64,000 nucleotides of DNA. Source: Scyliorhinus canicula. Taxonomy: Eukaryota. Under the pieces are notes generated by a model. The model ran no database searches, was not told where the DNA came from, and saw only the letters and a program-made list of their open reading frames with translations. Below are positions 35,789 to 58,803 of the stretch, piece by piece; the first letter of the stretch is position 1, and every line of letters begins with the position of its first letter. The stretch lies in the NCBI RefSeq assembly GCF_902713615.1, contig NC_052154.1, positions 175,283,988 to 175,347,987 of the forward strand, written 5' to 3'. The position numbers were made by a program, and so were the translations under genes.

Positions 35789-37351
35789 TCAATCAAACAG
35801 CCTCTTGAGGAAACTCTTCGTCATGGGTGTCCTCTTCATTGTTGCCGGCGATTTCTTACGCGGCAATTTGATTGGGGTTCGCTTGATCTGTCTTTTCTTT
35901 TGTGGGGTTTGAATTCCTCGGTCAATGCGCAGGTGCTCCTTGCAAAAATACTTTGTGTTTTCCTGCGAAAACTGAATGAGCTGGGACTCTGCCAGGTCCA
36001 TGCACTGGGCGTGTACCCAGTGACCGTCCTCCCTTGCACTGGAACAGAAAATCATGGCAGGTTTGTGGAGCTCTGTGGAGTAATGAGGTGCCCAGATGTT
36101 AACGTTCATGTTGCAGTTGGGGCTGCATTTAATCCAGTAGCCTTCCTCGTCGCCGTTATCCAGGTTCTCCGCATCGTCAGAGCCATCAGCCCCCACTTCA
36201 AAGTGAAATTCTTCCGAGTCTTCAAATGTGCTGCATTCTTCTGGGTCGGTGAATGATTCCTGGCTGCAAGAAACTTGGCTTTCTTCCTCTAACTGGCCGA
36301 AATTGGCGATGTAGAAGAAGTTGGCCTCGGCTGTATCACGTTTGCTATCTCCCGGGATGCCGATTAACACAGCACCATTCCCCATATTGTTCCCAAACCA
36401 GGTTTTGCTGGCTTTGATGTCACTGGTCCAATCTGGGGGCTCCCTTTCTAGGATCTGAATGTTGTTACTGTCCAAAATGATGGTGTTACAAAGCATTCTC
36501 TTCTGACTCTCGGATTCATAGCCACCCACAATGATGAATTCATCTTTGCTGGCTTGGGCCACTATTGCACTTGACACAGCGATGCCACAGTTGAGTATTG
36601 TGCACGTTACACTTGGAGAGGTCGCTAACAGGTCAACTTTCAGACTGAGCAACCTTGCAGGGCGGTGGTTGCTTCCGATGGAGTGACCCCCCAATATGTA
36701 GACGGTGTCCATTCTCGCCATGGAGACGTGGAATGAAAAGCCATCTTCTATTTCTGGCGTCAGGTGAGAGGTGCAATGGCCAGTGTTGATATCAATCAGA
36801 AAAACCCGGGGGGCGCAGTCGACCACACTGTTCCAGTTTTCTGTGGTTCTTTGCCCCGGAGGCCGATATGATCTTCCCCCAAACAAGACACCCAGGGTCA
36901 GCCCGTTGTTCTGAATCACATTGATGGTGTGGCCATATCTCCCCTGAGGGACATCCCCTCCAAGTTTTCTCTCAATGCAGCGGAGCGATGTCCTCTTGTT
37001 GCCCGTGCTGCTGTGAACCATCATGCAATAAAGCACACTGGACAAGTCATTATTTGGATCCCTTCCTCCATGAATGAAGTACAAGAGGCTGCTTGAATCT
37101 GAGGGGTCTGAGTGATGGGTGATTGCGGGGCATCGCAGTGGAGGGAGGTAGCAGGAATCAGGAGAAAACGACACCGCTTTCAGTTTGAGAACATGCCCCT
37201 TGAGCTGCAGGAGGAAAACTCCTGTGCTGCAGGATCTCCTTGGCCAACCTTTCTGACCAAAAAGGAAGATTTCCCCGTGAAAATTGAACAGCGAGAATCC
37301 GGTGGCGATGAGCGCAGTGTTGCTGTTATCTGAAACCATTTGCAGGGACAT
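35789..37351 (-). CDS. RAG2: V(D)J recombination-activating protein 2 (520 aa; true start is Met16 of the listed ORF)
   Basis: Begins MSLQMV...GFSL...FGQKGWPRRSC, has kelch repeats, acidic hinge FEDSEEF, PHD finger (GYWIKC, KPAMIFC, GHWVHAQC) and C-terminal SFLKRLFD. Minus-strand acceptor tttctttgcaAG ends at 37376, 24 nt before the ATG at 37351. Confidence 0.99.
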   Translation of the reverse strand: MSLQMVSDNSNTALIATGFSLFNFHGEIFLFGQKGWPRRSCSTGVFLLQLKGHVLKLKAVSFSPDSCYLPPLRCPAITHHSDPSDSSSLLYFIHGGRDPNNDLSSVLYCMMVHSSTGNKRTSLRCIERKLGGDVPQGRYGHTINVIQNNGLTLGVLFGGRSYRPPGQRTTENWNSVVDCAPRVFLIDINTGHCTSHLTPEIEDGFSFHVSMARMDTVYILGGHSIGSNHRPARLLSLKVDLLATSPSVTCTILNCGIAVSSAIVAQASKDEFIIVGGYESESQKRMLCNTIILDSNNIQILEREPPDWTSDIKASKTWFGNNMGNGAVLIGIPGDSKRDTAEANFFYIANFGQLEEESQVSCSQESFTDPEECSTFEDSEEFHFEVGADGSDDAENLDNGDEEGYWIKCSPNCNMNVNIWAPHYSTELHKPAMIFCSSAREDGHWVHAQCMDLAESQLIQFSQENTKYFCKEHLRIDRGIQTPQKKRQIKRTPIKLPRKKSPATMKRTPMTKSFLKRLFD

Positions 37352-37465
37352 GTTTGCAATGGGAAGCTGACAAACCTTGCAAAGAAAAAGAAACATAAAA
37401 GAATATTAGAGCTGAAAGATTTATCGCAACATTGAGTGTGCTGGGTTTTGAGGAAGCTGAACTTC

Positions 37466-37768
37466 TAATAATGATCTTTATTGTCACAAGTAGGCTCACA
37501 TTAACACTACAATGAAGTTACTGTGAAAAGCCCCTAGTCGCCACATTCTGGCGCCTGTTCGGGTACACAGAGGGAGAATTCAGAAAGCCCAATTCACCTA
37601 ACAAGCACATCTTTCGGGACTTGTGGGGGAAAACCGGAGCACCCGGAGGAAACCCACGCAGACACAGGGAGAACGTGGAGATTTCCCACAGACAGTGACC
37701 CAGCCGGAAATCAAACCTGGGACCCTGGCGCTGTGAAGCATCAGTGCTAACCACTGTGCTACCGTGCC
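37466..37768 (-). mobile_element. V-SINE (alternative-tail subfamily) about 90 bp into the RAG2 intron
   Basis: Same family as 11031-11313. Confidence 0.85.
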
Positions 37769-38289
37769 ACGTAACCCCTCTGGAAACTCTTTGGCAGCTG
37801 CAATGCAGTTTTCCCCTATAATTTGTCTGATAAATCAACATTTAAAAACAAACTTCACTTTATATTTCAGCATTCAATTACTTTAAGTGGTGAAATTATT
37901 TTGTTATGAAACGAAAACATTGTGCATTGATTTTTTTTTTGGTTTTCAAAAAAATCAATTATTTGGAACGCACAAGCTGCAATTTCTTTCACTTTCCTCC
38001 AGCTCACTGTTTATTTCAATCCCAGCTCAGGATATGCTTCGTATTTTAGTTATTGTTCCATCGGTAGAGGGGTGGGGAAATTGTCCTGAGCGGGTTAATT
38101 GTACATCAGCCAGAGACAATGACCTGGAAACTGGTTAGCAGCGGTGGGGTCAGATTAGGAAATAATTCACGTGGTGGGAGAGGTTGGGAGGCTGCAAGTC
38201 TTGCCGGGCATTGGCCACTCATGTACTGAACGCCAGAGACCTCCACGGTATGCACCCTGCAATCTCAAACAGCCTCTCACTACAACACT

Positions 38290-39160
38290 GGATAAAAGCA
38301 AATTACTGCGGATGCTGGAATCTGAAACAAAAGAGAAAATTCTGGAAAATCTCAGCAGGTCTGGCAGCATCTGTAGGGAGAGAAAAGAGCTAATGTTTCG
38401 AGTCCGATGACTCTTTGTCAAAGCTAACAGACAGAGAAAGTGGGAAATATTTATACTGTGGAGTGAGAATGAAAGATGGGTCATAGCCACAGAAACCCAG
38501 GGAAACCGGGTGCTAATGGCCACAGAAACCAAGGGGAAAGAGTGTTAATGGCAGTCCCCAGAGAGAGCAAAAGATGTGAAAAGCCAAACAGCAGAGAAAC
38601 TAACATCAGAGGATGAACTGTAGATGTGGCGGGAGGGGAAGGGGAAGCAAAGAGGAGAAAGGTGCAGGAAAGGTGGATAAGACTGGGGGGGATTAAATAT
38701 ATATTAAGAAAGAAAGAAATGGTAAAAGACAGTTAAAATGAAATGAGATGAAAACAAATGGGTCGAGGTGGGGCTGATCATCTGAAGTTGTTAACTTCGA
38801 TGTTGAGACCGGAAGGCTGTAGCGTGCCTAACTGGAAGATGAGATGTTGTTCCTCCAGTTTGCGTTGAGCTTCACTGGAACATTGCAGCAGGCCAAGAAC
38901 AGACACGTGGGTATGGGAGCAGGGTCTTTTGTCAAAATAGCAAGCAACAGGAAGGTCAGGGTCCTGAATGCGCACAGACCAAAGATGCTCAGCAAAGCGA
39001 TCACCCAGTCTGTGTTTGGTCTCTCCGATATGGAAGAGACCACATTGGGAGCAGCGAATGCAGGAGTAGACCAAATTGGAAGAGATGCAAGTGAAACATT
39101 GCTTAACCTGGAATGAGTGTTTTGGGCCTGGGGTGTTAAGCATGGAAGAGGTAAACCTTA
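38290..39160 (-). mobile_element. Penelope-like element 3' end (GIY-YIG and terminal repeat)
   Basis: NLVYSCIRCSQCGLFHIGETKHRLGDRFAEH...RKLEEQHLIFQLGTLQPSGLNIE. Confidence 0.88.
38388..38425 (-). ncRNA. Hammerhead ribozyme variant (U3-A8 core), probably impaired
   Basis: AGCU-UUGACAA-A-GAGUC-AUCG-GACUC-GAAA-CAUU-AGCU. Stems I and II are perfect; the stem III ACGU palindrome has become ACAU. Confidence 0.55.
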
Positions 39161-39241
39161 ACCTTAACCTTTCTCCTCTTTGCTTCCACCGGCCGCCCAC
39201 TATTGGTGATAATTAATCTCACAAATATCGCAGTGGATAGT

Positions 39242-39564
39242 TGTGGTGAATGTATTATACTAATAATCCACCAGTGTATTTGTATCTGTGCTGTCGCACT
39301 TGTATTTGTATATTTGTATCTGTGCCATACTGTTGCCCTTGTAGGCTTTTCCTATGGGCCATTGTATGGCATTAACCATAGGGGAACATGTTGGGCATGT
39401 ATGGGCGCTGCCCATGGCTTCTCCCCCTTGAAGGGAGGTATAAAGAGCAGTCAACCTGCCGGCAGTTATCAGAATTGGTTCAGTCGCAGGCAGGCACTGT
39501 TCTAAGTTGATTAAAGCCACGGTTTACTTCTACTCAAGTCTCGAGTGAATTGATGGTCGCATCA
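39242..39564 (+). mobile_element. Solo LTR related to LTR C, with 5-bp TSD
   Basis: TGTGGTG...GTCGCATCA with TATAAA and ATTAAA inside. ATAGT is duplicated at 39237-39241 and 39565-39569. Confidence 0.9.
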
Positions 39565-39589
39565 ATAGTAAACAAGACAGTTTTGAATG

Positions 39590-41565
39590 AGAGGTAGACA
39601 CTGGAAGCATACATAAGATCAAGGCGACTGAAACTGATGAAACTTTGGAGGAATATCGTGAAAGTAGGACAAATCTCAAACGCGCAATAAAGAGGGCTAA
39701 AAGGGGTCATGAAATATCTTTGGCTAACAGGGTTAAGGAAAATCCCAAAACCTTTTATTCGTATATAAGGCGCAAGAGGGTAACTAGAGAAAGGATTGGC
39801 CCACTCAAAGACAAAAGAGGGAATTTATGCGTGGAGTCAGAGGAAATGGGTGAGATTCTTAATGAGTACTTTGCATCGGTATTCACCAAGGAGAGGGACA
39901 TGACGGATGTTGAGGCTAGGGATTGATGTTTAAATACTCTAGGTCAAGTCGCCATAAGGAAGGGGGAAGTTTTGGGTATTCTAAAAGGCATTAAGGTGGA
40001 CAAGTCCCCAGGACCGGATGGGATCTATCCCAGGTTACTGATGGAAGCGAGGGACGAAATAGCTGGGGCCTTAACAGATGTCTTTGCAGCATCCTTGAGC
40101 ACGGGTGAGGTCCCGGAGAACTGGAGAATTGCTAATGTTGTCCCTTTGTTTAAGAAGGGTAGTAGGGATAATCCAGGGAATTCTAGACCTGTGAGCTTGA
40201 CGTCAGTGGTAGGCAAACTGTTGGAGAAGATACTGAGGGATAGGATCTATTCACATTTGGAAGAAAATAGACTTATCAGTGATAGGCAGCATGGTTTTGT
40301 GCAGGGAAGGTCATGTCTCACAAACCTAATAGAATTCTTTGAGGAAGTGACAAAGTTAATTGATGAGGGAAGGGCTGTAGATGTCATATACATGGACTTC
40401 AGTAAGGTGTTTGATAAAGTTTCCCATGGCAGGTTGATGGAAAAAGTGAAGTTGTATGGGGTTCAGGATGTACTAGCTAGATGGATAAAGAACCGGCTGG
40501 GCAACAGGAGACAGAGAGTAGTGGTGGAAGGGAGTGTCTCAAAATGGAGAAAGGTGACTAGTGGTGTTCCACAGGGATCCGTGCTCGGACCACTGTTGTT
40601 TGTGATATACACAAATGATCTGGACGAAGGTATAGGTGGTCTGATTAGCAAGTTTGCAAATGATACTAAGATTGGTGGAGTTGCAGATAGCGAGGAGAAC
40701 TGTCAGAGAATACAGCAAAATATAGATAGATTGGAGAGTTGGGCAGAGAAATGGCAGATGGAGTTCAATCCAGGCAAATGCGAGGTGATGCATTTTGGAA
40801 GATCTAATTCAAGAGCGGACTATATGGTCAATGGAAGAGTCCTGGGGAAAATTGATGTACAGAGAGATCTGGGAGTTCAGGTCCATTGTACCTTGAAGGT
40901 GGCAACGCAGGTCGATAGAGTGGTCAAGAAGGCATACAGCATGCTTGCCTTCATCGGACGGGGTATTGAGTACAAGAGTCAGCAGGTCATGTTACAGTTG
41001 TATAGGACTTTGGTTTGGCCACATTTGGAATACTGCGTGCAGTTCTGGTCGCCACATTACCAGAAGGATGTGGATGCTTTAGAGAGGGTGCAGAGGAGGT
41101 TCACCAGGATGTTGCCTGGTATGGAGGGTGCTAGCTATGAAGAAAGGTTGAGTAGATTAGGATTGTTTTCGTTGGAAAGACGGAGGTTGAGGGGGGACCT
41201 GGTTGAGGTCTACAAAATTATGAGAGATATGGACAGGGTGGACAGCAATAAGCTTTTTCCAAGAGTGGGGTGTCAATTACAAGGGGTCATGATTTCAAGG
41301 TGAAAGGGGGAAAGTTTAAGGGAGATGTGTGTGGAAAGTATTTTACGCAGAGGGTGGTGGGTGCCTGGAACGCTTTGCCAGCGGAGGTGCTAGAGGCGGG
41401 CACGATAGCATTATTTAAGATGCTATATGAACGTGCGGGGAACAGAGGGAAGTAGATCCTTGGAAAATAGGTGACAGGTTTAGATAAAGGATCTGGATCG
41501 GTGCAGGCTGGTAGGGCCGAAGGGCCTGTTCCTGTGTTGTAATTTTCTTTGTTCTTTTTGTTCTA
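39590..41565 (+). mobile_element. 5'-truncated CR1 LINE (tether and RT, ORF 39972-41303) with 3' tail
   Basis: KSPGPDG, DFSKVFDKV, GVPQGSVLGP, and FADD mutated to FAND. (TTGTTCT)n tail at about 41545-41565. Confidence 0.93.
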
Positions 41566-41759
41566 ATTCAGTCACTCCTGTCACATCACCTTCCCTTAGT
41601 TCTTGTTTACTATCCACTGTGATATTTGTGGGATTCATTATTTGGGAGCACTGGTAATAATATATTCAACATATTTCTAGGATACATCATCTTCTTATGG
41701 AATACTATAAGAGACATAACAAGATGGGACATCTGTTCCCCCCTACTTGCTCCCCCCCG

Positions 41760-42013
41760 GATTCCGGAACTAACATTGAGTGGATGAATTTACTCGGAAG
41801 GCTCATTTCCAGGGGGAAAATGCCGCTTGGATTTGTGGGTTTTGTAGTTTCCAGTGGGAAAATGCCGCTTGCGATTGTGGGGGTTGTAGTTTCCAGTGGG
41901 AAAATGCCGCTGCGGTTGTGGGGGTTGTAGTTTCCAGTCTCGCCCACCCAGACTACAGCTCCCAGAAAACCCCGCACCGGCTCTGCCCCGCCCCCTCAGC
42001 GTTGCTAAGCGAC
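41760..42013 (+). promoter_or_regulatory. IFTAP/NWC promoter inside the RAG2 intron, probably bidirectional
   Basis: Four ACTACAnnnCCCA motifs (three on - within a tandem repeat, one on + at 41952-41964), TTCCGGAA and CGGAAG ETS sites at 41762-41800, GC box CCCCGCCCCC at 41986-41995, X-box GTTGCTAAGCGAC at 42001-42013, and local CpG enrichment. Confidence 0.8.
41806..41937. repeat. 41-42 bp tandem repeat, three units plus a partial unit, in the NWC promoter
   Basis: Unit TTTCCAGTGGGAAAATGCCGCTTGCGATTGTGGGGGTTGTAG. Units start at 41806, 41848, 41890 and 41931. Confidence 0.95.
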
Positions 42014-42023
42014 AGGAAGGAAG
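41995..42023 (+). other. IFTAP: Putative IFTAP non-coding exon 1 (5' end uncertain)
   Basis: Strong donor AAG|GTAAGA with GT at 42024, immediately after the promoter motif cluster. Confidence 0.6.
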
Positions 42024-42189
42024 GTAAGAGCGCTGGAAACTGCACCAAAAATCTTTAAAATATTCATAACAAAATCCAAGTTTTTACTTATTACAGAATA
42101 AACTTATAGCAACGGCTGCTTAATAATACCCAGATGCATCTGAATCCTCAAACCCCAATCTGTAATAAATAATTAAATAACTCCCACAG

Positions 42190-43020
42190 CGGGATCAGGA
42201 TCTGGAACAGGATTTGTATCAGGAGCTGGAACAGGATTTGTAACAGGAGCTGGAGCAGGATTTGGATCAAGAGCTGGCTAAGGTTCAGGAACTGTATCTG
42301 GATCTGGAGCAGGAGCTGGACCAGGATCTGGAATAGGATTTGTATCAGGATCTGGAGCAGGATTTGGATCAGGAGCTGGCTAAGGTTCAGGAACTGCATC
42401 TGGATCAGGATCTGGAATAGGATTTGGATCAGGATCTGGAGCAGGATTTGTATCAGGATCTGGAGCAGGATTTGGATCACGAGCTGGCTAAGGTTCAGGA
42501 ACTGTATCTGGATCTGGAGCAGGAGCTGGACCAGGATCTGGAATAGGATTTGTATCAGGATCTGGAGCAGGATTTGGATCAGGAGCTGGCTAAGGTTCAG
42601 GAACTGCATCTGGATCAGGATCTGGAATAGGATTAGTATCAGGATCTGGAGCAGGATTTGTATCAGGATCTGGAGCAGGATTTAGATCAGGAGCTGCCTA
42701 AGGTTCAGGAGCCGGATCAGGAGCAGGAGCTAGATCAGGAGCCAGAGCAGGAGCTAGATCTTGATCAGGAGCAGGAAGGATCAGAATCAGGAACAAGATA
42801 AAGAAAAGCAGTTGTAGCTGGAGCAGGAGCTGGATCTAGATAAGGAGCTGGTTCTAGATCGGGAGCAGGAGCTGCACAGGATTGGGAATGAGATCAGAAT
42901 TAAGAGCAGTAGCTTTATCGGGAGTAGGATCAGGAGTGGGAACACAATCTGGTTTAGGAGCCACAATGAATTACAGGAATAGGAGCAGGAGAATCAGGGT
43001 TAGGAGCAGCAGAAGGCCTT
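42190..43020. repeat. Hexamer-based minisatellite with a 210-bp higher-order repeat
   Basis: GGA(T/G)C(T/A)-type units. Marker TAAGG at 42279, 42381, 42489, 42591 and 42699, giving spacings of 102, 108, 102 and 108. Confidence 0.92.
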
Positions 43021-44419
43021 GGATACCCTCCTCACCAGTGCCTTCACCCCAATCACTTCCCCACATTCCTAGAATATCCAAATTACCTAACAAGCACGTT
43101 GTTCGGGACTTGTGGAAGGAAACCGGAGCACCCGGAGGAAACCCACCCACATACAGAGTATCACCAAAACCTAATAATCTATGTGCCTTTAGGAGAGCGG
43201 TCAATCTTAATTGTTTCATGGGATGTCACTGGCTAGGCCTTGAACCGCGGCAGTCCATGTGGTGTAGGTACACCCACAGTCCTGTTCGGGAGGGAGTTCC
43301 AGAATTTTGACCCAGCGACAGTGAACAAACATGATATATTTCTAAGTTAGGATGGTGAGTGGCTTGGAGGGGAACCTCCAGGTTGTGGTGTTGCCATGTA
43401 TCTGCTACCCTTGTCCTTCTGGGTGGTAGTGGTCGTGGGTTTGGAAGTGCTGTCGAAGGACCCTTGGTGAGTTCCTGCAGTGAATCTTGTAGATGGTACA
43501 GATGGTCGGTGCAGACTCGATGGGTCGAATGGCCACCTTCTGCAATGTAGGGATTCTATGGATTCTATGCATGTTTGGCAGACTGTGTTCAGAGCTTCTG
43601 CTGTTTCATCTCTGACTTCATTCCATGTTCAAGGATGCTTCCCCTTGGGGCGCAGTGTTTTTAACTTTTGAGTTGCACGACTTTCTATTACTCTAGCCTA
43701 TGGTAGAGGTATAATTTTGCAATATTGCAATAACATTTTGCAATATCAGTTTTGTTACGGACATTTCATTTTCTCTTCTGAATTCTAACATTCCTTCTCT
43801 TGCCTTTCGGCTTGGTACATGTGTAGGCCTCAGAAAGCAATACCTTAAGTTTCAGTGAACCAATGTTTTCTCCTGAAATGCAGTTAATTGAAACGAGGCC
43901 CTGGTGGCACTCGTTGCAATAAAAGATAGTGTTAATCACTGAGCAACCTGCATTGCCGAGCAATTCACTTTTCATCTTGTGGCAACTAGGGGATTTTCAC
44001 AGTAACTTCACTGCAGTGTTAATGTAAGCCTACTGGTGATACTAATAAAGATTATTATTATTAAACCATTTTTTTTCAAAGAATCTGGCTTTCCTTAAGA
44101 AACCAAAACCAATTTCTTACAGAAATCTGACAAAATCATGTCATTTTCATTTCTAGAATTGTTCCTTGAATTTTTTTTTAATATGGAATTTCGATTGAAA
44201 TTCTTCAATTTCCAATCAAATATTTAAACTGGACCTAATCAGCGTCTTAAAAATGTGAATTCTTCAACCATGGAATCAGTTGAAAATGAGCCTTGTGCTA
44301 CTTCTTAATGTTCGGAAGGTATTTGCGAAAATGGAAAATCTTCATTAATAAGTAATGTAAATTAAGAGGGTGGATTATGGTTGCTTTTTGAAGTAATTAG
44401 TCGTATCCCAGAAATACAG

Positions 44420-44975
44420 GGCGGGATTCTCCGTAGCCTGACGCCGAAATTGGGATCGGCGATCGGATGGAGAATGGCTTCCGAAGCCGGAATCGGGGCA
44501 GGCGCTGGTTTGACGCCGGTTTGCGATGCTCCGCCCCCTCCAAATCGGCATCATCGGGACGTGCATTGAGTGCAGTCGCAACACCGTTGGCACGTCATCA
44601 GCCTGGTCACCCATGCTGCTCCGCTCCCGATGGGCCAAGTTCCCGACAGCACGGGCCATGTGTGGTCCCAGCGGTCAGGAACCTGGCGTGCCGGCTGTAG
44701 ACAGTGTTCAGCGGTGATAACTCGGCCGGGATCTGTGTCGCTGGCTAAAGAACTTTTGCTAAGGCTGGGGGGAGTGGTGAGGGGTGGCCAGGGGGTGGGT
44801 TGTGGGGTCGGGGTGGGCGGGTACGTGGTCCACACAACCGACGCCATGTTTCCCAGCGCGACTGGTGGGGGCTTAGACGTGCGCAGCGATTCTCCGGCTG
44901 TTCTCAACGCAACCTGCGGGTGTTCCATGCGGCGCCGGTGCTAGCCCCTCACCGGTACCAGAATTGGGGAGGGAT
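44420..44975. mobile_element. GC-rich TIR element
   Basis: Starts GGCGGGATTCTCCG. Internal CCGATCGCCGATCCC-type inverted motifs are shared with the other copies. Confidence 0.7.
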
Positions 44976-45610
44976 TTAATTTCCCTGTTGTAGAGCACTA
45001 TGGCAAACAGTAAGTGCTCCTGCTGAGAGGATGGGAGATTATGTTTGAATTTCACTGGTTGATATTCTATCCAGTGATGCTGTCTGGGACATTCAGTGAT
45101 AATTATTGCCAGTTTTGAATATGCATAACTGCAGAAACTGCAACATGGAGACTATTGCGTTTTTAGTTTTCATGGTTAATGATAATCACGGCAGACCAGG
45201 TATTAAATAATATTTCCCTTTCATTAAGTATTCACTAAAATTCAACATTTACACAAAATTTACATTTACAGTAATCTTTGTCCAAATTTATAATTCATTT
45301 GACTTTTGTATGTAGAGTGGTTACTCTGTGGAAACCTTTCAGATTTTTGCACTTTTTAAAAAGGCAACTAACCAATATCCAGTTTGTTAATTGTATTCTT
45401 GATAGATTAGAAACTGGAGGGAGTTTGTGGACTGTCCTTCCCTGATCCTCCAGTTTTCTTAATTTTCCTTTACTCGGAGATTGGGGTGGGAGACAGTTTC
45501 ACATTCACCAACTGCCCTCTGGTATCTCACCATCTGACCATACTTGATGTCTGAGACTCGTTTGATTATGGATAGACCTGACATCTCTCCCAAATATCGA
45601 AATCGGGTGA

Positions 45611-45816
45611 GGCCGGCACGGTGGTGCAGTAGTTAGCGCTGATGCCTCAGGGCACCGAGGACCAGGGTACGATCCAGGCCCCGGGTCACTGTCCGTGTGG
45701 AGTTTGCACATTCTCCCCATGTCTGCGTGGACCTCACCCCCACACATCCCAGAGATGTGCAGGGTGGTAGATTGGCCACGCTAAATTGACCCTGAATTGG
45801 AAAAACTTTCAAAAAA
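45611..45816 (+). mobile_element. V-SINE (short subfamily)
   Basis: A and B boxes plus AATTGGAAAAA tail. Confidence 0.8.
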
Positions 45817-46526
45817 GAAATTGCCAGGGTGCAAATCACCATAAGTATCATTTTAATTGGGTTTTGGATTTAAATTCTGAGGCAGTCACAATTGGAAACG
45901 AACTGAACTATTTCAAGAGTTTAAATTCAACATGTTTGTTCTCAGATTATGCACGTTACAGGGTCACATTATAGTGTATCGGAGGTTGGAGCAGCATCAA
46001 GTTTAAATGGAAAAAAAACAAATCTCACAATCTGGGCAAAATAAATGGTTGCTTGTCACTGTTTATAGTTAATGATAAATCTATTTTAGTTTATCTTTTA
46101 TCTCTATCTCTGTACTAAATGTATTTCAAGTCACCTTAACTTTCTTCCAATACAAAGGCAGTTGCAAAATATTATAGGTTTTTAATCACTGTCTTTTCTG
46201 GCTTCAGGTTTCCTTTCAATAGAACTTGAGTAGATTAGCTACCAGCCTATTCTGTCTCTGATCCATTTTGCTGACTGCATTATTATTCTTTGAATACAAA
46301 AATTAAACTTAATCAGGATTGATAAGATTTTTATCTGTAAATACAGTATGGAGATCTTCACTGTTAGAGAATAAATAGAGCACAAATATGATAATCAGCT
46401 TTAATCACCTGTATAAGGACATGATTTCTCCCCCACTCAATTATCTGTACCATTTACTCTCTTGAGTTACAAATGGTAATTTTAAATAATATTCTAACTT
46501 TATTTTCAGTTTGTTCCTTATTAACT

Positions 46527-46836
46527 ATAATCTTTATTATTGTCACAAGTAGGCTTACATTAACACAGCAATGACGTTACTGTGAAAATCCCCTGCTCGC
46601 CACACTCCCTCAGTGTACCTGTTGGTGTACACTGAGCGAGAATTCAGAATGTTCAATTCACCTAATAAGCACGTCGTTTGGGACGTGTGGGAGGAAACCG
46701 GAGAACCCGGAGGAAACCCACGCAGACACGGGGAGAACGTGCAGACTCCGCACAGACAGTGACTCAAGCCGGGAATCAAATCTGGGTCTCTGGCGTTGTG
46801 AAGCAACAGTGCTAACACTGTGCTGCGGCACCACCC
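46527..46836 (-). mobile_element. V-SINE (alternative-tail subfamily)
   Basis: Same family as 11031-11313. Confidence 0.85.
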
Positions 46837-47984
46837 GATATAACCATAGCATTAATGGATACAATTTTGTAACAAATTGTATTTAATATTTTTCTGCACT
46901 AAGTTATTTATGCAAAGCTTGGCTCTGATTATAAGAACTCCTGGCCAACAGTCAACAACTTTTTTATACTTTAGAGTCTGCGATAAATCAGTCAATGATA
47001 AGAACCTTTCAAAACAGTTCCACTATTTTAAACCTGTAAATAATCTATTGAAACACATGATTGCTCTGGGCTGGATCAGCCAATGTGGTAGGACTGTAAT
47101 CCTTACCTCTAATCGATTTTTTCAGACAATTTTAACTGGACAATACCAGGCACTTTAGAAGACTGAACTTGCTTGTAGAATTAGAAGGTGCAGAACACTT
47201 GGTAAATACGTAGCATAGGTCCGTGTTGGAGATTTTTGAGAGTTTACAGCTGGGTGCAGATGGTACCAAGCACTACCCTGATGACAGTAACTGTCTGATT
47301 ACTGCCGTACAACAGATGCAATAATGACGTGGCATGTTCCAAATGTACAAGATAACCAATACATCAATGCACACAAGTTACTATCTGCAAAGTTTAATCT
47401 TAAGTCCTTTCTGAACACTCACATCCTCCCAAAACTTGGTAAAACCCTTAAAAGTAAGTTTCCTTAGTTAGTTAGCTTATTATTAATCTCATTTTAAATT
47501 GAAACCGGAGCTTGAGTATGAAGGAGAGACTTTCTGCTGGCTTAGGCCAGTGATAGCAGCACAATCTGGATGGAATTGGACAAACCAGCACAACATAATT
47601 GAGGCATTTTAAATGTGCATGACGCCCAAAACCACTTTGAGAGTTCTGTGATCTGTTACACTAGGTTCAATATTCAACCTGACCCCATGCACCAAGTTGA
47701 GAGATTCCACCAATTGTGCATTTCGGGAAAACATATTCTTTAGATGTTACAGGTGTAGACTCATTTTACGTTTATCATGTCAAAAATATATGCAAAGGAA
47801 CTGACTTGTGTACATCAAGAAATTAGCAAATAGTTCGGGATAGTTTAAAAAAAATTATTTTTAGTGATTTGAAATAAAGTTACATTCAGATGGAGGACTG
47901 CGTACCTTTATAACAAATGCTTATTTTTGGTGATAAACCCATTTTGAACACTTTTGCTCAGCCCATAAGCATAAGCCTGACCCC

Positions 47985-48715
47985 GACCTTCCTGACGCTT
48001 GCGATTGCAACTTAGCATCCTGCTCTCATGCCCACATGTACACCTTTGGCCTGCTGCAATGTTCCAGTGAAGCCCAACGCAAGCTGGAGGAGCTACACCT
48101 CATCTTCTTACTCGGCACGTTACTCAGGACTCAACATTGAGTTCAACAACTTTAGGCTGAGACCTTTCTCCTCCATCTTGACCGTTTTGAAAAATATCCC
48201 AATGCAACACCCCGGTCCCCCCCCTCATCACCGGGCCATCTGTCACTTGTTCTTAAGTTTCTCTTTCACTGAACACTAATTGTTATCCTCCCATTAATTT
48301 ATTGTGATATTTGACCTTTATGCAACTACTAGCACCTTCTCCTGTCATTAACATTTTCTCTGTCTCGTGATCTACGCACCGGAATGTGGCGACTAAGGGC
48401 CTTTCACAGTAACTTTATAACTTAATTGAAGCCTACTTGTGACAATAAGCGATTATTACTTATCTTGTTGCAATCTCTCCGAGCTCCCACCAATCACTGA
48501 CCTTTTTTCTCCTCTGCTCCAGCTGTTCCACCCGCTCTTATACACTCTATCACCCAACACATTCCCTCTCTCTATAGCTCTGAAGAAGAGTCAGATGGAT
48601 TTGAAACGTTCTTTCTATTTTTTCTCTCTCCACAGATTGTTGCCAGACCTGCTAAGTTTTTCCAGCATTTTGTTTTTGTTTCAGATTCCAGCATCCATAA
48701 TATTTTGCTTTGATG
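47985..48715 (+). mobile_element. Penelope-like 3' end, same family as 38290-39160, with a hammerhead remnant at 48576-48610
   Basis: GLLQCSSEAQRKLEE-like coding remnant, and AGCT-CTGAAGA-A-GAGTC-AGATG-GATTT-GAAACGTT. Confidence 0.8.
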
Positions 48716-48765
48716 TTGTTAATAAAGGTTAATAAAGGCACCAGGTTTCCACTCTTAAATACACC

Positions 48766-49364
48766 AGGTGGGATTCTCCACCCCGCGCCGGGTTGGAGAA
48801 TCGCTGGGGGCGGTGGGGGGGCGCGAATTGGCCGGTCCGCCATCGGCACCGGCGCGGTTGCCATGGCGCCAGTTGGGGGCCGCTCAACACCCCTCCCCAC
48901 CCCCCTGCCGGCGATTCTCCGCACGCGATGGGCCGAGTGCCCGCCGAGTTAGGCCGAGTCCCGCTGCGTCGTTCTCGTATGGTCCTACTCGGCGGGACCT
49001 CGGCGTTCATGCTGCGGGGGGTGGCCTGGTTGGGGGGGGGGGGGGGGGGGGGAGGGGGTACCGACCCCGGAGCGGGGTGGGGGGGGGGGGGGCATCCACA
49101 GTGGCCTGGCCCGCGATCGGGACTTATCCCAGCGCCGGGCCCCTGTAGGTCTCCGCCATGTTGCATCGGGGCCGTCGCGGAGACGGCAACCCACACGCAT
49201 GCACAAACGCGCGCCTGCTAACGCAGGGTGAGGCTCTCCAGTGCCGGGCTGGCCCCTGTGCGGCACAGGATCGCTGATCCTAGGGGCCAGATGACGCCGT
49301 CGTAAAACGCTCCGGCGTTTACAACAGCGTCAACACTTAGCCCCAGGATTGGCAAATCCCACCC
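48766..49364. mobile_element. GC-rich TIR element, same family as 24371-25082
   Basis: GGTGGGATT ... AATCCCACC termini. Confidence 0.8.
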
Positions 49365-49689
49365 AGCACCTTCAGTAGAAAAGACAGAATTATGTTTCAT
49401 TATTCAGCCTCATTGTGCTGGCTCATTGACGCTTTTACATTTGTGATGAAGCAAATTAGTTTCAGCAGAAACTTGAACTGTGACCTAACCTGTGCAATTA
49501 TGAGCATATTTTGTGACCGTAATTTCCTGATCCTGCCCAAAGTGGAAACTGTGCTCTAATTTAGCAAAACATTTTCGAAAAGAATTACCTAGTTTTGGTG
49601 CATGATTTGGAAGACAGGTTATGTTTACGTGAAGTTGTTTGTGTTATAATACAAATGCACACTAATGTTAATTCAGTAACCAAGCACCT

Positions 49690-49870
49690 TTTGATTACAA
49701 GGTGATCTTGTGGTGTAGTGGGTACTGTCCCCGTCTCTGAGCCAGGCACTCCAGGTTCAAGTCCCACCCCTGGATTTGATGGCCAATGAAGGTATGTTCA
49801 TCAAGCGGCCAATCAGGTTAAATATCAACCTGTAAATCCTCCATCACGATCCAATGGCAGATGGTAAGAG
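49690..49870 (+). mobile_element. tRNA-derived SINE head of a third family
   Basis: A-box TGGTGTAGTGG and B-box GGTTCAAGTCCC. Confidence 0.55.
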
Positions 49871-52154
49871 CGGGAGAGGTTCCATCGGAGCTTCTCCCAT
49901 CACTATCCACACCTTCAGACGCCAACTTGCAGGAAAAAGTGCATGACTGTAACACATGATTGTATAGAATTCATAAGATAATTTTTGGCATAATTTGAGA
50001 CTTCTAATGGAAACATTCCTGATTTATTTCCCATAGATATAGTCACGATATACTACTAGAAATAGGAAAATAATGGGCAGGATCCTCCAGAATCGGGAAA
50101 CGCGATTGGGCGGAGGATCGGTTTTGCTGCCGAAATTGTGGCGGCTGCCGGTTTCACGCTAAATTACAATTCTCCATTGTCTCTATAGCGGCATTAATGC
50201 GTTCCAGAATGCACATACAGCACATTCCAGAATGCACATACAGTAAACGGCATTGGCATATCATTAGCAGGCCTGACCCGGTGTTCCCAGGTCCTCCGTG
50301 ATTCTCCGCATCCACTGTGGTGAATTCCCCACGCCGAGGTTCACTTGTGCTTTTAAAAATCGTGAAACATACGCCGTGGCTGCTGAGGGAGAGAGAGGAG
50401 GTACGGAAAGTGTCCAATATCGCCATAGTTTGCTGACAGTTGTACCACTGGCTGGGGGGGCTTCTGTGTAGTGGAGAGTTGGCCTGGAGGATAGTGTGGG
50501 AAGGTGAAATTGAGCTGGAAGATCAGTCTTTATCTTGTTGAATGGCAGAATGGGCTTGAGGGGTCGAATGGCCTCCTCCAGTTCCTGTTCCTTATGTAAT
50601 CTTGATGAAGTTCTGCTCTTATGATACAACCCCAAACTTTGCATTCCCTCTCATGCTAACGGCCCATTGTGCTTAGTTAACTGACATCATGAACTCAACC
50701 AAGGTGATTTTAACACTGCCTTTATCACCTGCCACTGGCGATTCACCACCACCAACAGACAGCTGCTCTGGCACCCTAACACCCCGTCAATCTCCATTCA
50801 ACTGAACAAATGAGTCTCAGCCAGGCTGATCCACCCCCAGTCCAGACCATCTCTTCAGCGTTCTTCACCTCTTGGTCTACATCAGCAACATGAATTTATG
50901 TTAGCCTAATATATAGTGTATGCAACAATATTTCTCTTTACCGCAGCACTTACATGAGCAGCTTACACATACATGCCTCAGTGTTGAAGCATGTGCCAGA
51001 TCTCACACTCTTAACTGCAGCATGCAGATGTGACCTTTTCCTTAGACCTCTCTGTGGATGAGCCAAGCTACTCACCTTGCTGAATACAGCAGGTCATTGA
51101 ACCTTTTCTTGCACTGAACGAGGGAATGCCTGTGCTCTCTATTGCGCTTATCCCAGTTGTAAATTGTGTTCAGACCTTCTTGGTTGTGGCAGATGGATAT
51201 CGAGGGCCACCTGGGTAGAGGGTAGATTTCCTGCTCTGGACTCCTTCCTGATCAGAGAAGCGGGGGCAGCTGGTTCCATCCCTTACCCCACAGCTCCCCA
51301 GTGTGACATTCAATCAATGAAAATGTAAGGATAAAAGAGTCCTGGGCCAGTCCGATTACAATGCTCTCATTCACTTTTACAGCCACTCAACAGTTTCACC
51401 ACATCGTCAATGATTACTGTTAACAGCGTGGTGGAGACGTGCAATTTATGTTGCGGCTCTGTGACCCCAAGGCAGCGAGCTGTGTTCCGTGACCACTGAT
51501 GCCCTACTGGTTTACTCCCTTTAAGTCAGGCTGCTATGCCATGACAGTACGCAGCTGTGAAGGAGCTGGTGAAGGGACAACAGTGTGGGCACATCTTGAT
51601 AGATGGGTGACAAGAGGGCAAGTGGCTGGGATTATGAGCATGGTACTGTTCATCGTTCATCCACTGAGTCGCGGTAACTAACTACGTGACTGCAGCATAT
51701 CTGAATGAGGTAAGGGTGGTAAGACAGTACCATCTCCCTGACTGTGCTGTGAACCCACACCATGCTTTCAATGGTTCACTTTGATTAGGCAGCAATGATG
51801 ACAATTCTCCCATAGGGAAAGCCCATGATGGGCCATCTGTTTCAGAGTCAGCCATCAGTTGAACAACGTATAGATTGCTCACACTCGCCTGACAAGTCAA
51901 TGATATCCCCTCTGAGGCACAGGGACTTCACCATGGATGAACAAACCCCTCAAATATGCCTTTCCGAAGGTCCACTTTTCATGTGCACCCAAGTTCCCTG
52001 ACCCAAGCCGGGCAAGCCTCCGACCTGTCAATACTCCAATGTTGCCTACCCTGACTCATAATATAGCCCGCCACCGCAGAACACAAATCTAATGCGCATT
52101 TCTAAAGGCACATCTTAGGCATCTAATGCGCATTTCTAAAGTCAGGTTGCTTCC

Positions 52155-52400
52155 AAAAATCCAGACCATGGTCTTTGTTGCCAGAAATATCCAAGAAAAA
52201 TGTCAAGAACAACGCCACAAACCTCATTGCATTCATCGACGTGACCAAAGCATTTAAATAAAAGCAAAATACTGAAGATGCTGTAAACCTGAAATGAAAA
52301 CTGAAAGTGCAAGAAAAACTCAGCAGGACTGGCAGTATCTGTGGAAAAACAAACAGCTAACTTTTTGAGTCGAAAAAGACTTTTTCCAGAACTGCCGGAG
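52155..52400. mobile_element. RTE-type RT remnant (+) abutting a decayed Penelope terminal repeat (-)
   Basis: MVFVARNIQEKCQEQ...AFIDVTKAF, followed by a decayed copy of the 38290-38430 sequence. Confidence 0.6.
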
Positions 52401-52699
52401 TTGCACTTTGACTGTACTATCTTGAGTGGTAGATCAGAAACTGATGTCTTTGAAATCTGGACTGGATTGGGGTACCAGGGATGGGACCGTAGATCAGGAA
52501 ATGCACTCGGTTTTAATTGGTTAAGGTATCATCAGCTGTTAAGTGGAAGGCTGAATTTTAAATGTTGCAAAGTGAACATTCTAGATTCTAGAAATCTTGC
52601 TCTAATTTTACTGTTAACTGAAAATCACTATTCTGCAACGTGTAGTTTTTCAATGCCCAGGGATTATCACCTCCACAACTGAAGGTGGGTGGAGTTAAT

Positions 52700-54156
52700 G
52701 ATGCAATTCTCCGGAAAAATGTGGCAGCAGCTGTCAGCTCGGGGAGTATGACTAGGAAGACTGACCTTTAGAACAGGAAGAAGGTCAATGACCTACACCG
52801 GGCAACACGAGTGAGTAGATACCCAATGGTGCCGCCCCCCCGGTGAAGGGAGCATCTGGTCCCAACACCCCATGCGAGCCCCAGCCCTCTCTCCACCCCC
52901 TCCCCCCTCAGCATCTCCCCCCTCCTTACACCCCCTCTCCCCCCACTGTAAACCGCACATGTGGTTAACGATGCCTTCTCTGTGTCTCCTCGGGAAAAGC
53001 TCTCCCATAATTGTCGGGAGTGGGCCCAGTCTGGTGAAGGGGTGCTGGACTTGATAACCCTCACCTCCTTTAAGGGGTGGGCCCTGGAGTTGGCCAGTGT
53101 GGCCGAGGACAGATGGGTCAGCCACGCGGAGGCTGGCGGACGCCGCAGAGGTGAGGACCCACCGGATTCCACCCGGAGGACCTGTCAAACACGAGTTGTT
53201 ATTGCCTTACTGACTGACCCATCCCTCCCATTGACCACATGTCCATTCTCCCACAGGTCCAGCAGCCGACGGCGCCAGCCCATCGCGGGGGCCCCCTCTC
53301 CTGACTCCGAGGAGATCGCCTCAGAGGAGAGCTCCAAGGATGCATGCGTGGTCGCGGCACAGCTGTCATCCCCATCCCCACCAGTGCAGATGTGGACATG
53401 CCAGTGGACAGGCTTCTGGGGCACAATCTGGTGAGCACCACCGCTAATGATGTACATCAGGTGGAGGCAGGAACCCCCAGGCGTGACAACAGTTGGAGAG
53501 CTGCTGGATCCCAAGACCCAACTGGGTCCCAGCCGGATGCTGAGCCTGTGGAACCCTTTGTCCTCGGTCCCCGATACCCCGTTTTGCTGGGGGCTAGCAG
53601 GGAGGCAGCATAGAGCTCGCAGCTCCAGCTGCCGATATGGCCCGCGGCACTTCCAGTTCAGAGGCCGCACACGGTCTGCAGCAGCCGCGCCGTGCTCCAT
53701 GGTGGACTCACCCGCGTACCTGGACCGCCAAAGCAGTACCCCCCATTTGGCCGCTTGCGCGCCTCGGACCGCCCGCCCACAGTGCCCCCAGCCCCAACTG
53801 AAGCCCCCCCTGCCCGCCGATCGGCCCTCCCCCGACTGTGGCGGCCCCGGACCGCGTCCGCAGCCGACATGCCGAGTTCACGAATGGTGTGAGCAGACAT
53901 AACCCACACTGTCGGGAACTCGGCCGGTTGGGGTTGGAGCATCGCAGGGCTGTCCTCAGGCAATGGCCTGAGTCGGTGGATACTCGGCGCGGCGTACTCT
54001 AAAGTACACCGCTTTTCAGGAGACGGAGAATTCAAAAACCAGCGGCGCTCCCGATTTTGGAGGCAAAACGGATTCTCCGCCCCGTCGCCAAACGCGATTT
54101 TGGCGTCGGGGAGCGAAGAATCCAGCCCTTAGTCTCCAAGACGGAGAATCCGGCCC
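52700..54156. mobile_element. Larger GC-rich TIR element or elements, Harbinger-type inferred
   Basis: Ends GAAGAATCCAGCCC (54128) and GGAGAATCCGGCCC (54156) match the MITE termini. GC-rich interior. Confidence 0.55.
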
Positions 54157-57100
54157 CAAATGTCTCTCTAATTCATATATAAGAATGGACATGCCTTAAT
54201 TATTACCCAAAGCAATTTTGAAATGATTTGATGGGGTAATCCAGTCCTTGATGCCCACTCTGGTTCTGAATGAAGTATGTTTGGAGCATCAGTCTGCTGC
54301 AGTGCTAACGTGTGACTTGACACTTTCGTGAGGAAACCGAAAAAGTGAAAAAATGCACCATTTTGAATCTGATGTTTCAAATGTATGATATACCGTAAAC
54401 TGATCACTGGAATAGAATTCTCTAGTCTTTAATATTATGATTATAGAGGGTGCACACTGCCTCTCTCTGACTGTTTACATTCTTTATAATGTACCTTGCC
54501 AAATGTTACATTTTTTTGTGGTTGTTACTGTATGAAGAACTCTTCGAAGAATGGGAGCTGACAGATGCTACATCTCATTAGTCAAAACCACAGAAAAACA
54601 GTTCTTTGCCTTGTTTAATTCATCACAAACGAACTCTTCTCCAAGATTTAGAGACTTAGATTAGTAAGCTTACAGCTTGGCTTATTTAAAAAAATTAATA
54701 TTTAGATGCCATTCTCATTATGGACAGAAAATGAAGTCCTGGATTTTTAATGTTCAGGTGCAAGGTGAAGTCAGCTCATTATAATATATATTTGATCCTC
54801 TTAGTATTGTTGGGACAGGATAAAGATAAGGGGCAGATTATCTACGACAAGAGCTCCAAAGAGGCTGATGGTCACTTTAAAGCAACTGAGGGCATAAATG
54901 GCAATGGATGAGTTTGAGTAATGCCCCTTTCAGTAACATAGCTTTAGAGTTCTTGCAGGAAAGGCTGGCTTAAACAGCAATGTCAAAGTAACATGGATGA
55001 TGGAGATAGAACATGTGGATTTTACGTTGCCCAAGGTCAAAACCTAGCAGCAGGAGGGAAGACATTTGCTGGGCTTTGCAATGTTTCTCAGGTAAGTGTA
55101 CGAATGTATGAATGTATGTCGTTTTCAGCAAGCATAAGTTAGCCACATTACCAGCTTGACTGATTATCTTAAATCGGTTGTTAGTGTAGCTATTAGGCCA
55201 CTCAGCAATGTTAGCCATAGGCTGTACGTCCAAGGGATTGACTGATTGAAACAAGCAGCATGTTCCTTCAGTTACTCATATTAGGCAGCGTATAGACTAT
55301 GCTCATCCAGCCCATTCTTGCAAAAGTCACTTAGATGTGATGCCACGATAGGGCGGCACTGTCACTCAATTTGTTCTATGCTATGTAATGTTGACCATAT
55401 GTCTCTTAGAAGCACTAAATACGCTGTCAGAACAAGGAGCCTCAAATCTCATGTTCATATGCACAGAAGGTGACTGAAGACTTGAATGATTGGATGGCAC
55501 ATGTCTACTGTTTTACTCTCTTCCTGACATATATATCCCTTTTATCTTTGAAGATGTGACACCTTCCTAGCGCTAGAGAGAAAAGGAATAAAATAAAACA
55601 TACCAACCATGTGAGTTTGGGGAGGACCTTCCATCTGCCCGATCCCACTGCCTCTTTGCCACCACCCCAGAATCTCTATGACTCTTTCCTCATAAAGACT
55701 GAAGGGTTACAGCTTCCCCAATTGCATTTTCTGTCTCCAGTTACCTCTGAAGACAGGTGACTATGTACATGTTCACTTACGGGAGCCTGACCCTGTGTTT
55801 ATGGGTGGCACGGAGCACGTTCGGACGAGTGGTTGCTTGTCAGGCCTCGATGAACGCGAAGATTATTACCGCTTTCTTAACTTTGTTTCCATGAGCTATG
55901 ACCTCCGATGTTGGGAACTGAAAGGAGTCACGTGTTGGCTGAGGTCCTGTCTGCTGGCTCAGGTAGATCTAAAAATAATCCCATGACAGTTTTTGCAGAG
56001 GAGCAGTGAGCTCTCCCAGTGTTCAGAATTATTTCCTTAACCGGCAGCACTGAAACAGATTAACTAGACATGCATCCCGATTGCTGTTTGTGGAATCTGC
56101 AAATTGTTGGCGGTGGCACATTTTGGGACATCTTAAGAATGTAAAATGTGCTTTATAAATTACAAGTTACTCATTCTTTCGACAGGAAAATTATTCTGCT
56201 ACTTGTCTGAAGATAAACAATGCAATGAGCACGATTATTTGCACACAATGGTGCTATAAGAAAGTTGTCTGATCACTTACTTGATAACAGTTGCCTTCTC
56301 CAGGATATCATTTGCCTCTCCAGGGTGTCAGTTGTCACCTCACCAAATATATACGTAATATCATTGATTAAAAGATATTCCAAACAGACTTTCCAGGTAA
56401 ATTCTTTTAAATTCTGCAGCAGTTTGTATGTTTCCTAACTCAGTTGTCAGTGATAGAAGTCAAAACAATCGATAGCAAGAATGTTTCCTGTTACAAAACC
56501 ACTGGGTTTTGCATAAACCATTCAGAATGCCTTGTGTAAACATTTTGTGCAGGTTCATTCGAGATTCCCCAGAGAACAGATTTGCAGAAGTTTGAGTTTT
56601 GTTCTATTACAGACTTTAACTGTTATTTTTTAAAATGCTAGACAGCATGCTTCATGATGCGGCATCCTTCTTTCATTGTCAAAAAGCATTTTACATTTCA
56701 GAAACGTGTCAGAGTATTTTATGTTCCATTTTGCTTTGGAAGCTTCTCAGTAAAAATGCCAGAAATGTGTTTCTTAAGCAGTTCAATTTTATCACCTTTA
56801 ATGATAAATCACAATTACGCCAGTAAAAAGCAAGCAATGGCAAGTCTGCCATTCCCAATAAAAATCTTGCTGGAATTAATTTCAGCAAGACACATAGCCC
56901 TGTTTGGTGCTTTTTTGTCCTTGGGTTTCCTCTTAGTTTTGTGAGCTGCATATATACAGCAGTTTTTGCTGTAGAATTTTAAAAAAAAGTCACATATGTC
57001 CTTGCTATTCACCATATTGTAAACTGATGAAAATGGCCAAGAAGTTCGGTGACACCATGCCTGTAATTCAGACACCAAGTGGGTGTTACAGAATCCGATA

Positions 57101-57229
57101 TGGTGAACGCGCATTATAGATTGCTCTATTGGGTTAGACAGCCCTGTCCACGGTACCAGCCAGGACTATTGGAGATAATGACAAAAATATTCAAATTAGG
57201 GTCTTACACCTGCTGCTTTAGGGGCACTC

Positions 57230-57497
57230 TTGTGAGACATTATTTTTTAAAAGTTGCTTTTCATGGTTGAATAAAGCCACCATTGTCCCAGATGACCATA
57301 AGCTGCTCTCCTCTTTGAGGGGGAGAGCTGATTGGTGGCGATTTAACCTCAGGGTCACCACACCTCAGGCAAGGGGCAAAGTTGAGAAGTCAGGGCCTTC
57401 ATGAATAACCTCAGCTGGTATAGGACTTGAACCCGCACTGTTGGCCTTGCTTTGCATCACGAACCAGTTATCCAGCCAACCGAGCTAAACTGGCCCT
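57230..57497 (-). mobile_element. tRNA-derived SINE of a further family
   Basis: On -, head GGGCCAGTTTAGCTCGGTTGG with B-box GGGTTCAAGTCC. Confidence 0.65.
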
Positions 57498-58673: not shown

Positions 58674-58803
58674 ATGCCTGCTGTGTTTGGATCCCAAACT
58701 ATGGAGGAAGGATTAATAGTCTTTGATGTTTTGGATAGATTTTGTAGCAGCCATGAGCAAACGTATGCTGAATTCCTGAAATCGTTTATGCACTTAAAAA
58801 AAG
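58674..58803 (+). CDS. IFTAP: IFTAP (C11orf74/NWC) first coding exon; exon starts at 58652
   Basis: Acceptor ttctAG ends at 58651, ATG at 58674, donor AAG|GTAAGC at 58804 (phase 1). Peptide MPAVFGSQTMEEGLIVFDVLDRFCSSHEQTYAEFLKSFMHLKK resembles the IFTAP N-terminus as I recall it (DVLDKF..HEQTY.EEFL..F.HL). Synteny with RAG2 fits. Confidence 0.88.

Follow-up and report, generated by a model that had tools for sequence, protein, structure and literature searches.

We found that the segment at positions 41760–42030 of the window (here, the whole stretch of 64,000 nucleotides of the Scyliorhinus canicula genome that was analyzed) is very likely the shark NWC/IFTAP promoter, in which the ZNF143-type site on the RAG2 side has been tandemly duplicated twice within the lineage, and we infer that all four sites now present are competent to bind ZNF143. 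Judged by comparison of sequences, the region is the cartilaginous-fish orthologue of the conserved ZNF143-dependent NWC/IFTAP promoter. The pair of sites and the X-box half-site are common to the six cartilaginous fishes compared, and the order of elements is collinear with that of the whale shark and the zebra shark; on these grounds the orthology is established and the three-unit state is derived. For the catshark promoter itself we infer bidirectionality, factor binding and the start site.

In the mouse, the NWC promoter lies in the second RAG2 intron, lacks a TATA box, is associated with a CpG island and is bidirectional (Laszkiewicz et al., 2012, PMC3439442). For both directions it needs two ZFP143 sites, which form imperfect inverted repeats about 40 bp apart and follow the consensus RRACTACANNTCCCRNNNNNCNNGCG; within the site, the strictest requirement is placed on the T of TCCC, and site pairs 40–50 bp apart are also present in human, dog, Xenopus and Latimeria (PMC3439442). 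The mouse sites were placed at −10/−37 and −74/−100 (2014, PMC4157847), and in lymphocytes Ikaros binds TGGGAA, competes with ZFP143 and represses the promoter (PMC4157847). The mouse also has a second NWC promoter, downstream of exon 1 (PMC3035778). We found no description of the NWC/IFTAP promoter in cartilaginous fishes; a search of the literature for it in sharks brought up nothing beyond one review of general scope.

A 42-bp tandem array was revealed at 41806–41938 by Tandem Repeats Finder (period 42, 3.2 copies, 92% matches), and a repeat search resolved it into three in-register copies (units 1–3 in Table 1). Read on the minus strand, every unit opens with AAACTACA, followed by 2–3 bases, a CCCA core and a distal GCG; each of the three carries a minus-strand ACTACA-N3-CCCA site facing RAG2. 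The motif ACTACANNNCCC occurs four times in the 64-kb window, as against about 0.5 occurrences expected from its nine fixed bases. All four matches fall within 41837–41963, three of them on the minus strand (5' ends at 41848, 41890 and 41931) and one on the plus strand (41952). The repeat and motif searches therefore bear out the sequence-only reading, which had described a 41–42 bp unit repeated three times with a minus-strand motif in each and a fourth motif on the plus strand. The paired ETS sites, the GC box and the splice donor at 42024 that it had placed around these motifs can be read directly in the sequence. In the genome as a whole ACTACANNTCCCAGNA is rare and about two-fold enriched, with 284 matches vs. 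139 for the reversed control.

All four sites possess the ACTACA box, the 2–3 nt spacer, the CCCA core and the distal GCG, with 1–2 mismatches at the 17 specified positions in one of two spacings. The minus-strand site of unit 3 is the partner of the plus-strand site that faces IFTAP: the two are inverted, their centers lie about 42 bp apart, and they differ from the published consensus at 2/17 and 3/17 positions, respectively. The arrangement of two inverted ZFP143 consensus sites 40–50 bp apart is thus found here together with two additional RAG2-side copies. In units 1–3 the T of TCCC is replaced, giving ACCC or CCCC. Since none of the three copies has lost its ACTACA box, CCCA core or distal GCG, all four sites could recruit ZNF143 together with THAP11/HCFC1. 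The spacing of 42 bp corresponds to about four helical turns, so that the array copies would lie on the same side of the helix.

The box, the spacer of 2–3 bases, the core and the distal GCG are those of ACTACA-extended Staf sites (ZNF143/THAP11/HCFC1); we know of no description of tandem reiteration at a fixed 42-bp period for this motif class. The array also resembles promoter minisatellites (VNTRs), in which head-to-tail units containing a factor site arise by slippage or unequal exchange at short direct repeats, but it differs from them in having 3.2 already diverged copies and in being known from one copy number.

Table 1. Coordinates of the promoter elements, exons and neighboring features in the window.
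Feature	Position	Strand	Details
Palindromic ETS pair GGATTCCGGAAC (TTCCGGAA)	41760–41771		Read in the sequence; GATTCCGGAAC unchanged at the corresponding position of whale shark and zebra shark
Unit 1	41806–41847	−	ZNF143-type site at about 41824–41850 (AAACTACAAAACCCACAAATCCAAGCG); 1/17 mismatch to the ZFP143 consensus with one extra spacer base
Unit 2	41848–41889	−	ZNF143-type site at about 41866–41892; 2/17 mismatches with the extra spacer base
Unit 3 (41 nt)	41890–41930	−	ZNF143-type site at 41908–41933; 2/17 mismatches to the consensus RRACTACANNTCCCRNNNNNCNNGCG
Partial fourth copy TTTCCAGT	41931–41938		Aligns to whale shark TTCTCAGA
IFTAP-facing ZNF143/THAP11-type site AGACTACAGCTCCCAGAAAACCCCGCA (AGACTACAGCTCCCAG from 41950)	41950–41976	+	1/17 mismatch with an extra spacer base, 3/17 without
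GC box CCCCGCCCCC	41986–41995		Within a 16-nt insertion absent from whale shark and zebra shark
RFX-type X-box GTTGCTAAGCGAC	42001–42013		Between the IFTAP-facing site and the exon 1 donor; whale shark has GTTGCCTGGCGAC
Putative non-coding IFTAP exon 1	41986–42023	+	Start by analogy with mouse; donor AAG/GTAAGA, GT at 42024–42025
Alternative IFTAP 5' exon ending ATGTTTCTCAG/GTAAGT	55048–55091	+	Left boundary uncertain; single copy in the genome
First coding exon of IFTAP	58652–58803	+	ATG at 58674; Pfam PF17722 IFTAP, E = 2.6e-12; present in 19 runs from 9 studies
RAG2 coding exon	35789–37375	−	ATG at 37351 (MSLQMV...); acceptor AG at 37377–37376; Pfam RAG2 and RAG2_PHD
LINE insertion	39972–41575	+	Reverse-transcriptase ORF at 39972–41303 (Pfam RVT_1) and 3' end; between the promoter and the RAG2 exon
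Deeply conserved block, candidate RAG2 promoter and 5' exon	47100–47400	−	77% mean column identity among chimaera, skate and sharks

To place the array in an evolutionary context, RAG2 loci with 10-kb flanks from five other cartilaginous fishes were compared with the window: the sevengill shark Heptranchias perlo, the skate Amblyraja radiata, the chimaera Callorhinchus milii, the whale shark Rhincodon typus and the zebra shark Stegostoma tigrinum. All five contain, upstream of RAG2, exactly one RAG2-facing and one IFTAP-facing ACTACA...CCC site in head-to-head orientation. The distance between the ACTACA starts is 18–21 nt in four of these species, 62 nt in Callorhinchus and 20 nt in the window. 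Every site in the six species has 0–2 mismatches at the 17 specified consensus positions in one of the two spacings. Thus, the number of units, which the sequence-only reading had suggested comparing across sharks, is one on the RAG2 side in 5/5 outgroups vs. three in the catshark.

A version of the window with a single unit aligns collinearly with the Rhincodon and Stegostoma sequences; the alignment begins at the ETS palindrome, extends to the start of the intron and covers about 204 nt at about 74% identity. The single-unit versions were used for this alignment; with the full-length window, MAFFT misplaced the left flank of the outgroups. The three species have the same order of elements, namely GATTCCGGAAC, the unit, the IFTAP-facing site, the X-box, GCGACAGGA, the donor and the first bases of the intron, and the window differs from the whale shark and the zebra shark by the two extra units and the 16-nt insertion. 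The array is located between the end of the RAG2 exon at 37375 (minus strand) and the IFTAP exon beginning at 58652 (plus strand). This position and the collinearity with the two sharks agree with the identification, made in the sequence-only reading, of the region as the counterpart of the known NWC/IFTAP promoter. We picture the ancestral core as two head-to-head ACTACA-type ZNF143/THAP11 sites with about 20 nt between the ACTACA starts, followed on the IFTAP side by an RFX X-box, a short non-coding exon 1 and its donor.

Because the five outgroup species have one unit, the extra sites can be attributed to local tandem duplication. Unit 1 matches the whale shark unit at 32 of 40 positions, unit 2 at 29 and unit 3 at 28. 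Units 2 and 3 share the derived states CAGT for CAGG and GGGGG for GGTTT; a single substitution and a single indel separate the two. The proximity of unit 1 to the outgroup and the derived states common to units 2 and 3 fit two successive duplications. In our reading, the first of them produced unit 1 and a precursor of units 2 and 3, and the second, after several substitutions, produced units 2 and 3. The sequence TTTCCAG opens the unit and also opens the sequence just after the array, where the whale shark has TTCTCAG. Since TTTCCAG flanks the segment, the joins lie within a short direct repeat, the pattern that slippage or unequal exchange would leave; a 42-bp segment containing the RAG2-side site would have been duplicated twice and joined at TTTCCAG. 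Aligned with the whale shark, the partial copy at the right end of the array is the original right flank and the source of this short direct repeat. On the sequences compared, the duplications postdate the split from Orectolobiformes, and the five outgroups give no finer date. It should be mentioned that the array had been ascribed to recent local tandem duplication: its local and tandem character stands, while "recent" is unproven, as the units are separated by one to several changes and point to a two-step history.

The array is a single-copy feature. Both the 301 bp around it and the 43-nt unit (searched with up to 3 mismatches) have their own locus as the sole match in the 4.22-Gb genome. 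A dispersed repeat, a transposon-derived array or the 3' tail of a LINE can therefore be ruled out, since there are no other genome copies and homology to the neighboring LINE stops at about 41557–41575. An snRNA-type gene with Staf sites was likewise rejected (no Rfam match at E up to 0.1 in 37000–48000).

The extra units may be neutral products of slippage, so that only unit 3 and its plus-strand partner work, whereas units 1 and 2 make no measurable contribution and are bound to decay. We regard this as a genuine possibility, though one we tentatively disfavor. The five outgroups get by with a single site on the RAG2 side, ACCC or CCCC stands in place of TCCC in the duplicated sites, and a join at a short direct repeat arises by slippage or unequal exchange without any selection; in addition, a contig of one transcriptome run (X1) shows indel variation in unit 3. 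Decay of this kind is, however, hard to see in the units themselves, as all three copies retain ACTACA, CCCA and the distal GCG with 1–2 mismatches at 17 positions, and unit 1 is still close to the outgroup sequence. Whatever the contribution of the two extra copies, the change in output that they cause is probably modest in either direction.

On the IFTAP side of the array, the IFTAP-facing ACTACA is followed 32–59 nt downstream by a GTTGCY half-site, and then by a splice donor, in 6/6 of the cartilaginous fishes compared. The conserved X-box fits the role of IFTAP as a cilia gene. The position of the exon 1 donor is kept in the whale shark and the zebra shark (CAG/GTAGG). No TATA box was seen between 41950 and 42000. 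In the mouse, the start lies 10–20 nt past the IFTAP-side (proximal) site; by this analogy, IFTAP transcription in the catshark probably starts at about 41986–42000, with an exon 1 of roughly 25–40 nt spliced from 42023. The CpG enrichment of the array region is borderline: at 41800–41999 the GC content is 0.57 and the observed/expected CpG ratio 0.55, and at 41900–42099 these values are 0.49 and 0.75, as compared with ratios of 0.0–0.4 in the promoter flanks and a whole-window mean of 0.55. Beginning 170 bp into IFTAP intron 1, the interval 42192–42873 is occupied by a nested minisatellite that has periods of 12, 24, 102 and 210 with up to 96% matches and is nearly free of CpG.

The array may not be the sole or the main start of IFTAP, because the annotated isoform X1 has a different 5' exon, the one that ends at 55091. 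The N-terminus of this isoform is MFLR-LNISAFDM, and its MFLR part needs that upstream exon. A matching MFLG start was observed in S. torazame IFTAP. In the annotated isoform X2, the N-terminal 46 residues lie in one open frame at 62184–62321 (plus strand), which replaces the exon at 58652–58803. IFTAP thus has several 5' exons, as the two isoforms use exons at 55091 and 62184. The exon ending at 55091 may be internal, or may be an alternative first exon, as with the second mouse NWC promoter (PMC3035778).

Among the listed contigs and joints of the transcriptome runs, neither a transcription start at the array nor a junction from 42023 to 58652 was seen. The mean depth of run X1 is 28.5 in the bin 41876–42042 vs. 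5.0 and 2.2 in the bins on either side. Only about 1.5 of the 28.5 can be ascribed to the 5-deep contig listed for this run, so a commoner short piece must be present there, as a short exon 1 would be. In run X2, one unspliced 4-deep contig crosses the donor at 42024. Run X9 has no contig over 41709–42190, though IFTAP exon 2 is complete in this run, and a raw-read run (X5, an oligo-dT library) has no reads over the same interval, a blank to which we attach no weight. An exon 1 of about 25–40 nt yields almost no 31-letter words, which may explain the blank runs. A search for short N-terminal fragments reading through the junction of exons 1 and 2 gave no candidate, and exact look-ups with the IFTAP proteins P0137 and P0152 found no transcript contig on record.

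These data bear on the view that the array has lost its role as principal IFTAP promoter and survives as a weak or relic start, with most transcripts arising downstream, either from the exon that ends at 55091 or from that of isoform X2 at 62184. The first exons of the two isoforms, the blank over the array in run X9 and the downstream promoter of the mouse speak for it. We nevertheless consider it unlikely: the promoter core, the X-box and the exon 1 donor are kept from chimaera to sharks, the exon ending at 55091 could be internal and spliced from 42023, an exon 1 of about 30–40 nt could escape contig alignment, and the depth of run X1 is raised in the exon 1 bin.

Turning to the RAG2 side of the promoter, Pfam matches place RAG1 on the plus strand (5777–8989) and RAG2 on the minus strand. 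A contig of run X1 matches 37200–37375, ends exactly at 37375 and continues with 28 more letters that are unplaced in 37376–42190 among the matches listed; therefore, RAG2 mRNA is spliced at the acceptor in front of 37375, the one given in the sequence-only reading. More than 3500 candidate copies of the LINE were found in the genome, and the 40 that were scored are about 91% identical and end at 41557–41575 of the window. Since this LINE lies in the interval in the opposite orientation, the array could be coupled to the RAG2 exon only by splicing or by read-through over a long distance. The proximal RAG2-side site lies 4.6 kb from the RAG2 start codon in the catshark; this distance is 313 nt in Callorhinchus, reaches 1.2 kb in the skate and amounts to 2.9 kb in both the whale shark and the zebra shark.

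The sequence-only reading had suggested that the motifs, pointing outward in both directions, could drive antisense RAG2 transcripts outside lymphocytes. This wording has to be corrected, as minus-strand output toward RAG2 would be RAG2-sense, as it is in the mouse (PMC3439442). It had also named a candidate minus-strand donor, AAG/GTGATG, with 41590 as the last exon base. This sequence is present, but its use as a donor found no support. No joint from 41590 to 37375 was found among the joints listed (15 of 42) in the read layout over 37200–42190, an interval that includes the LINE and SINE-like repeats with tens of thousands of pieces; the X1 contig over 41599–41925 has no spliced end at this donor; and the segment 41576–41755, which holds the donor just outside the LINE end, has no match in other sharks.

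The conserved block at 47100–47400 carries TTATCTTG and CAGCTG motifs and, in the RAG2 direction, ends with GAG/GTAAG in the window and in the two orectolobiform sharks. If this block, which is a good candidate, is the RAG2 5' exon and promoter, the array would sit inside a RAG2 intron. BLAST revealed collinear conserved blocks past the promoter at 43730–44410, 45044–46423 and 46841–47368. Other conserved non-coding blocks common to sharks are located at 54454–54570, 56433–56705 and 37802–37991, the first two of them being also present in Callorhinchus. Such blocks may be RAG regulatory elements. A very high-copy element occupies 37367–37867 directly upstream of the RAG2 acceptor, and the loose ends of its reads resemble a tRNA-derived SINE (GGTACGGGAATCGAACC). 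A hammerhead proposed at 38388–38425 in an earlier note had no Rfam match at E up to 0.1; the segment falls within a very high-copy repeat at 38202–38535, where contig depths reach tens of thousands.

Taken as a whole, the catshark promoter and the mammalian NWC (IFTAP/C11orf74) promoter are alike in their position upstream of the RAG2 coding exon, in their divergent orientation relative to RAG2, in two inverted ACTACA-type ZFP143 sites about 40 bp apart and in a short non-coding first exon, which is putative in the catshark; a TATA box is absent in the mouse and was not seen between 41950 and 42000 in the catshark. They differ in that the catshark has three tandem RAG2-side sites instead of one, and in that the LINE and other repeats separate its promoter from the RAG2 start codon, while the mouse NWC start lies 313 nt from the RAG2 exon. 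Furthermore, the CpG island is borderline in the catshark, and its duplicated sites have another base in place of the T of TCCC.

The spacer of the units offers another explanation of their multiplication, namely that selection multiplied a TGGGAA (Ikaros-type) core and thereby strengthened silencing in lymphocytes rather than activation. This core occurs on the plus strand at 41855 (unit 2) and 41897 (unit 3), once per unit; it was made by a G-to-T change common to these two derived units alone and is absent from the homologous 226 bp of the whale shark and the zebra shark. The idea draws on the Ikaros-mediated repression known from the mouse, but there the Ikaros core overlaps the ZFP143 core, whereas in the catshark the two are 21 nt apart, and six-base cores easily arise by chance. 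We therefore consider this explanation very unlikely. A broader proposal, that the two added units are non-neutral and that three in-phase sites and two new TGGGAA cores together retuned the balance of IFTAP and RAG2 transcription, also seems improbable to us.

Finally, an error of assembly in which a single unit was wrongly expanded to three is hardly credible: short tandem repeats are occasionally miscounted in assemblies, but the units of the array differ from each other and are hence distinguishable, and contigs from two public runs cross it, that of run X2 spanning 41788–42118 with no gaps and one differing letter and that of run X1 spanning 41599–41925 with units 1, 2 and most of unit 3. 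Compared with the assembly, the X1 contig has one C fewer in a C-run (41752), one A fewer in unit 3 (41904, AAA for AAAA) and an added T (41910), which gives CTTGCG as in unit 2. The differences in unit 3 may be real polymorphism or a mixture of units 2 and 3 produced by graph assembly.

The array is thus a lineage-specific variant of a known promoter, small and probably mild in its regulatory effect, and not a new kind of element. This promoter is the third conserved element in the RAG locus, and its bidirectional ZNF143-dependent activity has been proposed as an aid to the survival of the RAG transposon in the ancestor of jawed vertebrates. With the two-site architecture extended to a chimaera, a skate and four sharks, its origin can be placed at the base of jawed vertebrates. 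Of these cartilaginous fishes, the catshark alone departs from the one-plus-one arrangement, whose spacing is near constant in four of the five outgroups. The lineage with three sites is a natural variant in which one could examine how the number and orientation of sites set the two directions of transcription. Should the transcription balance have been retuned, one would expect either RAG2-sense transcription to be stronger in testis or another non-lymphoid tissue, or IFTAP to be shut off more tightly in lymphoid cells, and the catshark would amount to a dosage experiment of nature on a promoter that has been proposed as the shelter of the ancestral RAG transposon.
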